NCBI RefSeq assembly: GCF_021869535.1
Contig: NW_026262690.1
Span: 103,788,001 to 103,852,000 of the forward strand
Length of the DNA stretch: 64,000 bases
Direction: 5' to 3'
From: Mytilus californianus
Taxonomy: Eukaryota
Shown: piece by piece, positions 5,821 through 20,815 of the stretch
Numbering within the stretch: position 1 is the first letter of the stretch
How the letters are laid out: each line of letters begins with the position of its first letter
Translations under genes and position numbers: made by a program
Notes under the pieces: model-generated
What the model was told of the DNA's origin: nothing
Seen by the model: the letters and a program-made list of their open reading frames with translations, nothing else
Database searches by the model: none

Positions 5821-6393
5821 GAGACTTTTTGCAAGCAGCATTACAGAGGAATTTCGACAGCCGACCACTAAAAGCGATTCGTATTCACACGACAATGTCA
5901 AAGTCAGCACACGTTTTCGATGAACAAATATGAGATATCTTAACGAATACTTTTTTATTTCTGGAATGAAAAGAAAATTGCAATCAATATCTATTGAAAC
6001 AAAGTTTTTATAGACCTGATTGTCAACTGGCATAACACAAAGTATCTATTCTTTAATATGATCAACCACACTCGTTTCAATGTGGACAAAATGGGTTCAA
6101 TTAAATGGGCGTACACAACATTTGAATGGCATCCGCATGCAGAGTCCGATTTCGTTTTCTGATTTTGAAATGCTCACCACAGGCAGTTTTTGCACGAACT
6201 TCACGGGTGCAGCTGTGATCAATGCATGTCTTTGTGTAAATGACCGCACGAAATCGTGCACTTTTATATAGACCGCCGTTTATGAAATCTGTGTAATAAC
6301 TATTAGTTGGTAAATAAAAAAGTAACTAGTTTTCAGTTATCGTGTATGTTTATGCCTTTTCCAAATTGCCAAACCGATACAATAAAAATTAAC

Positions 6394-6445
6394 CGCCCAA
6401 CGTGGGGCTCGAACCCACGACCCTGAGATTAAGAGTCTCATGCTC
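6394..6445 (-). pseudogene. tRNA-Lys(CTT) 3' fragment (52 nt), cut by insertion E1
   Basis: ...GAGTCTCATGCTC is followed by T11 instead of TACCGACTGAGCTAGCCGGGC. Confidence 0.95.
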
Positions 6446-8003
6446 TTTTTTTTTTTATCTTTATTATATTCACACTTTGTATATACATATCACAGATTAC
6501 AATTACAATTACACATACATGAAAACATTGTAAATAATTACTGTCCTTTCTCTGAAATGAATGATATTCTAAGTTTTACAATCTATATATTTACTTATTT
6601 TTTTCCCTAACATAACTCTCTGATAATGAACTTGTGTATACTTAAATCTTCTACTCTTTTTTTTTTTTTTTACTTTTTCTCAATTTTTAAATAAAACAAT
6701 AAAAAAACAACAGTTCAACTATTACAAGGATGAAAGAAACTCAAAATGTGTAAATACGCAAATGATCTATTTTAATTAATGTTCGTTGTTTAAACAAAAA
6801 ACGGTTGGTTTCCAGACCAGAATTTTGATACATCACAAGAATTATTTTAGAATTATTTCACGTATTCAACATGTATTGTCCCCCCCCCCCCCCCCCCGAT
6901 AACAGTTTATTCATCAAAGCACCACAAACAAAGTCTATGTATCTCTGCGTATCTTTCCATCCTTGGAATACCACGAACGTAACAAATAATTTCATCATCG
7001 TCCGATTTTCTAATATCTCTAAATCTGTTGACGTAAGACATTGCGTTTTCATATTCCTTTTTATCAGTTTCTAAATTTATATGACGAGATTCACCACGTT
7101 TCCCTATAGTACACATGACTACCGTGTCTCTCTTTTTTAATTTTCCTATAATACAACTTCCCTCTGATCGTCTGCTAAAAACTATTTTCTGAAAATGACT
7201 ATCTGTACACGGACTCTTCCCTGTAATTATTAATTTCGGAGCGATAGTTTTTATTTTATCTATTTCTCCATTTTCTTTATCCTTAACATCCGTGTGTAAA
7301 TTCCGTTCAGTTCGCGAACCTTGACACACTATACTTTCCGTTATTTCATTGTCCTTATTAATTGTTTTGTCCAGCGATACACTACCCGGCTGAACAACTT
7401 TCACTACAGGTGTAATGTTTACTTGTTTAGGGGCTACTAATGGGAGATCGATCTTTCCATCGTGTAGCATATCATCACCCGAATCCATTACCACTTCTGA
7501 ATTATCGATGTTAATATCAAGTGTCTTATCAACGTCGTCTTCTGTATTGTCTATTCTTTCTTTCAATGTTTTCATCCTTTTATTGTCTCTGTCTCTATTA
7601 GATCTGGACTTATGCTTTATTCCTCTATTGATGTGTATTGAATCACCCCTTGTCCAAACCAATGAAATTCTCATTTTGTCACCAAGGTAATTGGAATTCC
7701 ATGTAAATTGTTCATATTCATCTATGATACTGTTAATTAACGCAACTAAAGGCTTTGGCAATTTTTCCATTATGATTTCCCTTTTAAGTACCTCAACGTT
7801 TCACAGCAAAAAGTAAAGTTACCAAACAACAAATACGCACAGCATAATTCTCAAAAATGTCAGTATTTCAACTTACATTACTGTTAGGTAGTCACATTTA
7901 CTTATCCCGGCTGGTTATATCCAAATCCACAAGAAATAGTAACCCAATAACAAGAGTAGAAAATTACACGTCTATATCCGATTAAGGTGCACTCGACTTT
8001 TCA
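6446..8003 (-). mobile_element. E1: 1.56-kb polyadenylated non-autonomous retroposed element with one ORF, inserted in tRNA-Lys
   Basis: Minus-strand 3' end AATAAAGAT(A)11 abuts tRNA nt 22; array resumes at 8004; no RT/EN, LTR or TIR visible; about 233-nt 5' UTR, 864-nt ORF, about 460-nt 3' UTR. Confidence 0.85.
6907..7770 (-). CDS. 287-aa protein of unknown function carried by E1
   Basis: Intact ATG-to-stop ORF in the same orientation as the A tail. Likely folded N-terminal region (LPKPLVALINSIIDEY...KHKSRSNRDRDNKRM), acidic low-complexity linker, and a C-terminal region of about 100 aa. No CCHC, RT or APE motifs. Confidence 0.7.
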   Translation of the reverse strand: MEKLPKPLVALINSIIDEYEQFTWNSNYLGDKMRISLVWTRGDSIHINRGIKHKSRSNRDRDNKRMKTLKERIDNTEDDVDKTLDINIDNSEVVMDSGDDMLHDGKIDLPLVAPKQVNITPVVKVVQPGSVSLDKTINKDNEITESIVCQGSRTERNLHTDVKDKENGEIDKIKTIAPKLIITGKSPCTDSHFQKIVFSRRSEGSCIIGKLKKRDTVVMCTIGKRGESRHINLETDKKEYENAMSYVNRFRDIRKSDDDEIICYVRGIPRMERYAEIHRLCLWCFDE

Positions 8004-8211
8004 TTTGCACGAACTTCACGGGTGCAGCTGTGATCAATGCATGTCTTTGTGTAAATGACCGCACGAAATCGTGCACTTTTATATAGACCGCCGTTTATGA
8101 AATCTGTGTAATAACTATTAGTTGGTAAATAAAAAAGTAACTAGTTTTCAGTTATCGTGTATGTTTATTATGCCTTTTCCAAATTGCCAAACCGATACAA
8201 TAAAAATTAAC

Positions 8212-8284
8212 CGCCCAACGTGGGGCTCGAACCCACGACCCTGAGATTAAGAGTCTCATGCTCTACCGACTGAGCTAGCCGGGC
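8212..8284 (-). tRNA. tRNA-Lys(CTT), intact copy just upstream of the E1 5' end
   Basis: Identical to the array consensus. Confidence 0.97.
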
Positions 8285-18952: not shown

Positions 18953-19160
18953 GAAAAATAAACAATAAAGGTATGTACCTATGAACTTGAACTTGGTTTA
19001 TTAGGGGAGAGTTTAGACTTAGGATTATACTTCATCTTCTTAATGTCCTCAGGGGTGAGGTTAGGGCTAGTAACTAAACGACGCCTTCTTTTTTTGCCCA
19101 TACTACGAGCCAGTTCCTCATCAGTAATTTCCATTTCTGATTCACTGGCAATCGAAGACT

Positions 19161-20282
19161 CTACATTTTGTCATGATCACAATCAACTATGTCAACATTT
19201 GACTCATGAGAAACTGACTCGTTCACTTTTTTGGACCCCCCTTTTTTATGCAAAATAATTATTTCATTGTCAATTAAATTGTCTTTTGAATGTTCATGTA
19301 CTGTCATAACTTCAGTTTGTTCATCATCATCGTCAGGAGTATTGTTACTGGAATCAGTGTTAGGATTTTCATCTAGGTTTAGTTCATCTTGGGCAGTATT
19401 AACATCAGAATTTTCTTTTACATCTGTTGAATCATCACGGTCATCTAAATTTAGCGCATCATCTACATCATCACGATCATCATTCTTAACCTCTTCATCT
19501 TCTTCCATTTGTTCATCATTAGTTGCATTATCATTTTCGACATTAGAGTCTTCAGCTTTAGAGTCATTTTGGGGTTCAGTATCAGGACGATCATAACCCC
19601 ATACAGGTTCACAAATACAGCTGGCTGGATATCGCTGACACTTATCACAGCGTGGTTTCGGACAATTGCGAGCCAAATGACCACTATCTTTGCAACGATA
19701 ACACATATTGTCAGGGCAGTTAATATAAACATGGCCGGATTCGAAGCATTTCGAGCAGACCCTTTTCTGATTGTCATGTAATTCTCTTATGTATTCGTGC
19801 GAATTGACACCTGTACAAAATTTCATACGGTACGGTAGACTTTGACGAAATTCTGGGAACCTTACTACCACGTACCTTGTACCATCTGCAATGGTCGTGC
19901 CAGGATGCATTCGGCGTTTAATAGGCGATATTAGTTCGGCACCGAAATCTTCAAGTTTGTTGGTAATTTCTTCATCCGTCACATAATACGACACATTAAG
20001 GAAGCTCACCATTTTTTGCTTTGAAAATACAGCGTTTGGCTTAAACTTCACATTGTTAACTTTGAACCCCGTGTCGCATAACAAATCAACAGCTTCTAGT
20101 TCTTTAAGTGTTATTTCATACACGTTTCCGCTTTTAGGTACACAAGCCTCCACTACACCTTCACCAACTTCTGCTTCTACACTATTTATAACCGACAAGG
20201 CCGAAACATTTTTATTGTCCCCAACATCAACAAGGACAGTCTGTTCCTTCACTGTTCTATTCGCCCCCCTTTCACCAGGCAT
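19161..20282 (-). CDS. E2 ORF1, gag-like nucleic-acid-binding protein of Tx1 type; probably truncated by a 1-nt deletion (native stop about 18979)
   Basis: Zinc knuckles CSKCFESGHVYINC and CYRCKDSGHLARNC, acidic tail; the shifted frame continues VESSIASESEMEITDEE...KKRRRLVTSPNLTPEDIKKMK...SSSS*. Confidence 0.9.
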   Translation of the reverse strand: MPGERGANRTVKEQTVLVDVGDNKNVSALSVINSVEAEVGEGVVEACVPKSGNVYEITLKELEAVDLLCDTGFKVNNVKFKPNAVFSKQKMVSFLNVSYYVTDEEITNKLEDFGAELISPIKRRMHPGTTIADGTRYVVVRFPEFRQSLPYRMKFCTGVNSHEYIRELHDNQKRVCSKCFESGHVYINCPDNMCYRCKDSGHLARNCPKPRCDKCQRYPASCICEPVWGYDRPDTEPQNDSKAEDSNVENDNATNDEQMEEDEEVKNDDRDDVDDALNLDDRDDSTDVKENSDVNTAQDELNLDENPNTDSSNNTPDDDDEQTEVMTVHEHSKDNLIDNEIIILHKKGGSKKVNESVSHESNVDIVDCDHDKM

Positions 20283-20742
20283 GGTGAAGGGAGGTTACGA
20301 AAACACTTTAAAATGTCAGAAATATGGAAAATAATTCACGATTCTCAAATGTAATGTCACTGGGAGTATTCACTTACACCTTAAGCCATGGATGGTTCGT
20401 CCAAAGACGAGAAAAATTTCGATTGAAACTCAGCTTTGAAAATTACGTCCTTCTTGCTGAATGTCCAAACCGGAAGTCCATCCGCATGCAGAGTCCGATT
20501 TCGTTTTCTGATTTTGAAATGCTCACCACAGGCAGTTTTTGCACGAACTTCACGGGTGCAGCTGTTATCAATGCATGTCTTTGTGTAAATGACCGCACGA
20601 AATCGTGCACTTTTATATAGACCGCCGTTTATGAAATCTGTGTAATAACTATTAGTTGGTAAATAAAAAAGTAACTGGTTTTCAGTTATCGTGTATGTTT
20701 ATGCCTTTTCCAAATTGCCAAACCGATACAATAAAAATTAAC

Positions 20743-20815
20743 CGCCCAACGTGGGGCTCGAACCCACGACCCTGAGATTAAGAGTCTCATGCTCTACCGA
20801 CTGAGCTAGCCGGGC
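20743..20815 (-). tRNA. tRNA-Lys(CTT), intact copy just upstream of the E2 5' end
   Basis: Identical to consensus. Confidence 0.97.

Follow-up and report, generated by a model that had tools for sequence, protein, structure and literature searches.

The stretch analyzed here (the window) comprises 64,000 bp of the Mytilus californianus genome (1.65 Gb; assembly GCF_021869535.1, contig NW_026262690.1, positions 103,788,001 to 103,852,000). Its left 24 kb consist of a tandem array of tRNA genes, and array and array remnants are interrupted by six poly-A-tailed inserts, termed E1 to E6, most of them related to L1-like retrotransposons of the kind that lacks long terminal repeats (non-LTR). We describe where these inserts lie, what became of the tRNA-Lys gene in which they lie, and how copies of the same families behave elsewhere in the genome.

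Six insertions at one nucleotide of a tRNA gene

Comparison of one array unit (1-1135) with the window by blastn defined a repeat of 1135 bp (1132 bp in one variant) carrying a tRNA-Arg(TCG) gene on the plus strand and a tRNA-Lys(CTT) gene on the minus strand. The live array (1-6446, plus strand), whose units 1 to 5 are 100% identical, ends at unit position 774. The array halts at this same position six times, at 6446, 12792, 24061, 24597, 32895 and 39282, each time against an insert lying on the minus strand, and at all six left junctions a short T-run (the minus-strand poly-A) abuts one identical tRNA-Lys nucleotide. The cut lies between unit positions 774 and 775, corresponding to nucleotides (nt) 20 and 21 of tRNA-Lys, with one A that is ambiguous with the poly-A tail, and not at 773 where an earlier note on this DNA had placed it. 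Beyond the 5' ends of the inserts the array picks up again in register ahead of the cut position, at unit 514, 455, 690, about 697, 541 and about 495 for E1 to E6 respectively. This early restart had been reported in the earlier note and was confirmed by blastn of the unit against the window; its values of 514, 455, 690 and 541 stand, its 697 for E4 is approximate because of an unrelated element described below, and its value of about 517 for E6 is replaced by an alignment starting at about 495 in badly decayed sequence.

The corresponding flank repeats measure 261 bp (E1), 320 bp (E2), 85 bp (E3), about 78 bp (E4), 234 bp (E5) and about 280 bp (E6). For E1 (unit 514-774), the left copy, which is downstream in the element sense, spans 6189-6446 and carries a 3-bp deletion allele at unit 675-677, and the right, upstream copy spans 8004-8264 and carries the TTA allele. 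For E2 (unit 455-774), the left copy lies at 12476-12792 (317 bp) and the right copy at 20479-20795, each with two private substitutions. The two copies of these repeats (258-317 bp) are 98.7-98.9% identical, far above chance, which confirms that the flank repeats are real. Intact tRNA-Lys(CTT) genes were called by ARAGORN just past the 5' ends of E1 (8211-8285) and E2 (20742-20816): the right E1 copy contains most of the former and the right E2 copy is completed to the latter by 20796-20816. The duplications of E1 and E2 therefore leave a complete tRNA-Lys gene and its 3' flank upstream of the insert. The earlier note was right on this point for E1 and E2; the copy that it had also listed, as decayed, upstream of E6 is dead, and no tRNA-Lys was called by ARAGORN right of E6. 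The sequence there is a decayed terminal unit forming the right edge of the array (49495-50148; unit about 495-1005, then 71-226; 25-29% diverged), of which 49495-49991 aligns to unit 495-1005 at 74% identity by blastn. No microhomology between the element 5' ends and the array was found at the joins.

The array on either side of E1 differs in haplotype. Units 1 to 5 (1-5675) correspond to the empty-site reconstruction of the E1-bearing unit when the allele of its right-hand copy is used, and the units right of E1 (8626-23421) form a second haplotype with the 3-bp deletion and T809C. The identity of units 1 to 5, together with this second haplotype, suggests that one side of E1 was amplified very recently. 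The unit left of E3 (23973-24061, unit 686-774) lacks unit 556-685, a 130-bp deletion with a 4-bp overlap that stops 4 bp from the restart point of E3 (690). The array and its load of inserts also continue leftwards, with a relative of E1 (72-77%) about 4 kb left of the window (G000:C110:103782326-103784214).

The most complete insert is E2 (12793-20478), an L1-like non-LTR retrotransposon. Its first open reading frame (ORF1, 19161-20282) carries a CCHC knuckle (PF00098) and its ORF2 (16334-18952, minus strand) encodes an apurinic/apyrimidinic endonuclease (APE; PF03372, aa 8-229) followed by a reverse transcriptase (RT; PF00078, aa 518-749), with a zf-RVT domain (PF13966) in 13401-14414. The ORF2 product is collinear, end to end, with residues 8-830 of human L1 ORF2p (E 1e-72). 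ORF2 is split by a 1.9-kb insert (about 14525-16448) that is missing from nine other copies of the E2 family and includes two tandem copies of 728 bp (about 14948-16401), 94% identical. E1 (6447-8003, 1557 bp) contains a single ORF of 287 aa, with no RT by ORF and domain search, and has seven near-identical copies (91-100%) elsewhere in the genome. A search of recorded contigs for ones encoding this ORF gave no match. E3 (24062-24512, 451 bp) is 5'-truncated and 83% identical to the 3' end of E5. The remaining three inserts are decayed L1-like elements whose ORF2 remnants share 33-56% amino-acid identity with E2: E4 (24598-32346; ORF2 remnants at 28287-31606), E5 (32896-39066; ORF1 and ORF2 remnants, 89% identical to a young 6.0-kb family termed F5) and E6 (39283-49494; ORF2 remnants at 45475-48424, with about 6 kb of extra sequence 3' of ORF2).

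E4 had been drawn too long in the earlier note. Its last 472 bp or so (about 32347-32820) are a separate, unrelated and high-copy miniature inverted-repeat transposable element (MITE) of about 470 bp with terminal inverted repeats of about 15 bp, for which a first look yielded some 2400 candidates in the genome at 92-96% identity. It is lodged precisely at the E4 5' junction. The 5' end of E4 thus lies near 32346 and its restart at unit 697 is approximate; array sequence was looked for in E4 to the left of the MITE and none was found. Tandem repeats of 162-165 bp are present inside E4 (26720-27099, matching a stretch in locus L023) and near the end of the window (62640-63111).

At the left junctions, including those of loci L027 to L038, the same 3'-terminal motif precedes the poly-A in E1 (6447-6470), E3 (24062-24085), E5 (32896-32920) and the F5 family; the motifs of E2 and E6 differ. 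The common motif is consistent with E1 travelling as a passenger with the E5/F5 lineage, and locus L038 likewise holds an E1-like 3' fragment (1616-1811). Distinct families and passengers of the L1/Tx1 type number at least four or five in the window. The order of APE and RT in ORF2, the zf-RVT domain, the CCHC-bearing ORF1, the poly-A join and the 5' truncation of E3 support a placement in the L1 group and not a finer assignment to the Tx1 clade.

Target range and two size classes in copies elsewhere

We examined 21 other full-length copies, nine of the E2 family (94-99% identical) and twelve of F5 (about 99% identical to each other, 89% to E5); every locus examined is a tandem array. None of the 21 lies in a tRNA-Lys gene, and at least 13 isoacceptors are hit. 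Copies of the E2 family, including E2 of the window, reside in Asn, Ile, Thr, Leu, Gln, Phe and Lys genes and those of F5 in Val, Ile, Leu, Pro, Asn, Met and Glu genes, the Leu hosts covering three anticodons (CAG, TAA and TAG). At the six window junctions and the 21 others the poly-A (A6-A11 at all 27) meets the gene at tRNA nt 20-22. This point immediately follows the D-loop GG(T)(T)(A) and lies at the 3' edge of the A box. The E2 and F5 families are thus tRNA generalists and not tRNA-Lys specialists, and what had been taken for a tRNA-Lys target is the same position of many tRNA genes.

The lengths of the flank repeats fall into two classes within the same families. Those of the E2 family (E2 of the window included) measure 8, 12, 14, 16, 63, 77, 146, 207, 320 and 404 bp and those of F5 measure 13, 13, 14, 14, 15, 16, 35, 162, 259 and 270 bp, as well as 1081 bp in an array of 1414-bp period. 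The short class accounts for 11 of the 21 copies: in ten the repeat is of 8-16 bp, with the second break after tRNA nt 32-37 in the anticodon loop, and in the eleventh, of 35 bp, it stops exactly at the end of the 18-nt intron of a tRNA-Met gene. The long class accounts for nine, with in-register restarts 63-404 bp early and the 1081-bp case (locus L033); one old copy was unreadable for its flank repeat. In none of the 27 events does the second break fall in the 3' half of the tRNA gene. The long duplication is therefore one of two outcomes for generalist tRNA-targeting long interspersed nuclear elements (LINEs), and not the family trait proposed in the earlier note, about half of the other full-length copies having repeats of 8-16 bp. 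Both the generalist status and the two-class pattern derive from these copies elsewhere, none of which is in tRNA-Lys and half of which have short repeats.

The 5' terminus of the element is identical in short- and long-class copies (all ten of the E2 family and all twelve of F5), and the extra nucleotides at the 5' join, 0-10 in number, are similar in both classes. No consistent motif was found at the second break, some sites being T-rich. At one 5' junction (c121c, that is, L009/L018, at G000:C121:92363099) a run of about 22 T on the sense strand separates the terminator of the upstream tRNA-Thr gene from the element; intact units at this locus carry about 7 T there, and the second break apparently fell within the RNA polymerase III (Pol III) terminator with extra T added. 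We also considered that the flank repeat might be a co-transcribed 5' leader, arising by 5' transduction or by an R2-style homology join. This was rejected, as every flank repeat corresponds to the array around it, even though a single family occupies arrays of different tRNAs.

Origin of the long repeats and of the insert chain

The overall explanation towards which we lean, with moderate confidence, is that of generalist tRNA-targeting LINEs with a fixed first nick and a second break that has a short or a long outcome. L1/Tx1-type LINEs equipped with an APE endonuclease and an RT, and the passengers they mobilize, would enter tRNA genes by target-primed reverse transcription, the first nick falling on the antisense strand at tRNA nt 20-22, where the D-loop GG(T)(T)(A) has just ended and the A box has its 3' edge. 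A break of the sense strand in the anticodon loop would produce the 8-16 bp duplication and leave the tRNA gene split and dead. A break located from a few bp to about 350 bp past the 3' end of the gene would instead produce a duplication of 60-400 bp, in which the 3' part of the gene and its terminator are copied upstream so that a complete tRNA gene is rebuilt 5' of the insert. E1 (261 bp), E2 (320 bp) and, anciently, E6 (about 280 bp) would be long-class events at intact sites, and E5, E4 and E3 (234, about 78 and 85 bp) would have been added later on the 3' side of E6, outside the regenerated gene. The junction positions, the two size classes, the lack of dependence of repeat length on array period and the constant 5' terminus are observed. 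That the long class stems from a staggered second-strand break and not from another repair route is what we infer, as is any reason for the break to avoid the 3' half of the gene.

Whether the long repeats are true duplications was assessed from 16 long-class events, the periods of whose arrays range over 404-2715 bp. Repeat length x is independent of array period P (Spearman 0.07), whereas P-x is correlated with P (0.70, p 0.003); x/P is below 0.3 in nine of ten events in arrays of at least 900 bp (p 1.4e-4), and an aliased exponential duplication model with a mean of about 300 bp beats deletion and uniform models by 6 log-likelihood units. Since x does not depend on the period while the size of the alternative deletion scales with it, the period test favours real duplications of roughly 60-400 bp. 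The constant 5' terminus and the similar number of extra bases in both classes further indicate that the long repeats are made at integration by the same end-joining step as the short ones. Most likely, then, the duplications are genuine and made at integration, as the earlier note had inferred from the window; contrary to what it had also held, they do not accompany every insertion.

Several observations weigh against this reading. Within an array, a duplication of x is formally equal to a deletion of the period minus x. No private variant is common to both flank copies in any long-class case, and the two copies of E1 differ by the TTA indel at unit 675-677, each allele agreeing with the array units across the insert from it; these positions lie in a TTATTA repeat, where slippage or conversion may have acted. 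At L033 the cut gene is a tRNA-Pro(TGG), yet the 5' flank begins 19 bp past the neighbouring tRNA-Pro(AGG), which is most simply a 331-bp target deletion; deletions of the target therefore occur too. The repeat at locus c121a (404 of 752 bp) equally well represents a 348-bp deletion. All six window events are long-class as compared to 10 of 21 elsewhere as tested (Fisher p 0.054). Finally, the lack of a consistent motif or microhomology at the second break also counts against it.

A deletion into the neighbouring unit, in which the element 5' end would be joined to resected or broken DNA of the preceding unit and an apparent x would stand for a loss of the period minus x, accommodates L033, possibly c121a, the lack of shared private variants and the different array alleles at E1, and is formally indistinguishable from duplication in an array; in the window array the loss would amount to 815-1057 bp. 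We nevertheless regard it as unlikely as a general explanation, because it requires sizes that scale with the period (197-493 bp where the period is 404-752 bp, 815-1057 bp where it is 1135 bp and 2553 bp where it is 2715 bp), would leave deletions below 800 bp absent from all six events of the window array, and as a model does no better than the uniform one and 6 log units worse than duplication. Similarly doubtful, in our estimation, is a homology-templated extension, in which the upstream end would invade another unit, be extended in register by tens to hundreds of bp and then be end-joined to the full-length cDNA; this would still be a duplication made at integration, without a staggered nick. 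Such a copying step would explain why the upstream copy of E1 carries the allele of other units and why the flank copies at loci c1 and c121a are no closer to each other than to other units. Private changes over the long-class loci c1, c121a, c121c, L034 and E2 of the window are nominally in excess in the upstream copies (14 versus 5 in the downstream ones), but the difference falls short of significance, with a single indel contributing four of the 14. Nothing observed requires the extension, moreover; the 162-bp repeat of L027 lies in a context of 2.7-kb period with few templates nearby, and the cases of 63-85 bp, which stop shortly after the terminator, have the appearance of nicks.

The array itself is clearly dynamic, as seen from the 100% identity of units 1 to 5, the two haplotype blocks that flank E1 and the 130-bp deletion beside E3, and collapse between in-register pieces could have made the E3-E6 chain. 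That the long repeats generally arose after short duplications, through later unequal exchange or gene conversion, is however very improbable: homologous exchange would find no homology at the join between array and element 5' terminus, yet the 5' nucleotide of long-class copies is constant, and very young copies are already long (E1 is 100% identical to other copies, and the flank copies of L027 and L030 are 100% identical). Least credible of all is an assembly artefact; tandem arrays of identical units are hard to assemble, but junctions of this class are present at no fewer than 14 independent loci, spread over eight contigs and over different arrays and periods, and of the words sampled across the E2 5' junction 69-78% occur in public sequencing runs from this species.

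The four inserts E3 to E6 form a chain separated by short pieces of array, namely 24513-24597 between E3 and E4 (unit 690-774, 7.1% mismatches to the live unit), 32819-32895 between E4 with its MITE and E5 (unit 697-773, 6.5% mismatches) and 39067-39282 between E5 and E6 (unit 541-774, 7.9% mismatches and 4 indels). The earlier note had proposed that the target is re-presented after each insertion, and we considered whether the chain was built by serial hits on the regenerated upstream gene. The inner pieces contradict re-presentation in the chain, as all of them start at tRNA nt 21 without the 5' part of the gene and none is an intact target. Serial re-hitting is impossible by geometry for E5 over E4 (541 < 697) and for E6 over E5 (about 495 < 541), since the duplication of a newcomer cannot pass the 5' end of an earlier insert without copying element sequence. 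Divergence leads to the same result: relative to the live unit, the inner pieces have diverged by 6.5-7.9% and the flank right of E6 by 25-29%. The latter flank also stands 27.6% away from the piece left of E6, too great a distance to be double the age of a piece that differs from the live unit by only 7.9%. The chain was thus not built by re-use of the regenerated gene. From the same flank divergence, E6 is much the oldest insert, and E5, E4 and E3 came later on its 3' side. A smooth gradient of decay across the three inner pieces was entertained and dropped, as it vanished when mismatches were counted apart from gaps.

This order of arrival is compatible with three routes that our analysis does not separate. 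The old poly-A/nt-21 half-site may have been nicked again, giving duplications of 234, 78 and 85 bp; the elements may have entered separate units, with a later collapse between the in-register pieces; or deletions of 0.9-1.06 kb may have occurred. The same architecture occurs at another locus (L029/L030, G000:C121:108571052-108583316), where two F5 elements that are about 99% identical lie head to tail in a tRNA-Ile array with a spacing of 269 bp, made of 9 extra nt and 259 bp of array starting from tRNA nt 21.

Implications and comparison with known systems

The size of a target-site duplication records the position of the second-strand break, the least understood step of target-primed reverse transcription. 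A fixed first nick followed by two sharply different second-break outcomes, in a gene of known protein occupancy, constitutes a natural system for that step, and it illustrates how an element can enter an essential multicopy gene while the number of gene copies is maintained. A bolder proposal, to which we give rather little credence, is that these LINEs recognize the A box and D-loop of any tRNA gene, that Pol III factors or their own protein position the second break, and that the long outcome is host-sparing. If true, the break would fall in the anticodon loop or past the terminator and never in the B-box half, a working tRNA gene would stand beside every insert, and the manner in which such elements saturate tRNA arrays at little cost would be explained. 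Site-specific LINEs are under development for gene insertion, and an element recognizing a conserved position of every tRNA gene would for this reason be of practical interest.

Several groups of mobile elements resemble the mussel families in part. The target-specific LINEs of the Tx1 clade (Keno, Mutsu, Kibi and Koshi, and Dewa, which targets a tRNA-Leu array spacer) likewise belong to the L1 group and are of APE type; they possess ORF1 and ORF2, end in poly-A or simple tails and insert specifically into multicopy small-RNA genes or their arrays (Kojima & Fujiwara 2004, as summarized in PMC3706591 and PMC4494074). The families described have one target each, in the spacer for Dewa, whereas the mussel families cut within the coding region, at a structurally equivalent position in at least 13 tRNA species. 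NeSL-1_TV (tRNA-Pro), LIN15_SM (tRNA-Arg) and LIN25_SM (tRNA-Glu) are also non-LTR retrotransposons inserting within tRNA genes, but they use a restriction-like endonuclease (RLE) and one tRNA species per family, and no long duplications are reported for them in that source (PMC4640811). Dada DNA transposons target tRNA genes as well, with some duplications in the A box (PMC3706591, PMC8869645), and differ from the mussel elements in being DDE transposons with duplications of 6-7 bp and one tRNA species per family. TRE5 and TRE3 of Dictyostelium target tRNA genes too but land outside the gene, at a distance, via Pol III factors. In the literature searched, we met neither LINEs that cut within genes of many tRNA species nor long duplications of variable size at tRNA genes, a search that is incomplete and leaves novelty unproven.

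Human L1 (ORF2p structures 8uw3, 8sxt and 8c8j) is the best match of E2 ORF2 and likewise uses target-primed reverse transcription with poly-A. L1 normally gives duplications of 7-20 bp; in cell assays, long duplications and deletions of the target are seen now and then. Its target is the loose TTTT/A, whereas the first nick of the mussel elements is confined to one tRNA-gene position and their long class makes up about half of the events. The closest precedent is R9 of bdelloid rotifers (Gladyshev & Arkhipova 2009, Gene 448:145, cited in PMC2861651). R9 belongs to the RLE group and reportedly makes a fixed duplication of about 126 bp in 28S rDNA. The mussel elements show neither a single fixed length (8-404 bp within one family) nor an RLE acting in rDNA; they are of APE type, their target is the tRNA gene, and their variable duplications of 63-404 bp alternate with an 8-16 bp class in the same families. 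What they share with R9 is to be site-specific non-LTR retrotransposons that insert in a multicopy RNA gene and make an exceptionally long target duplication.

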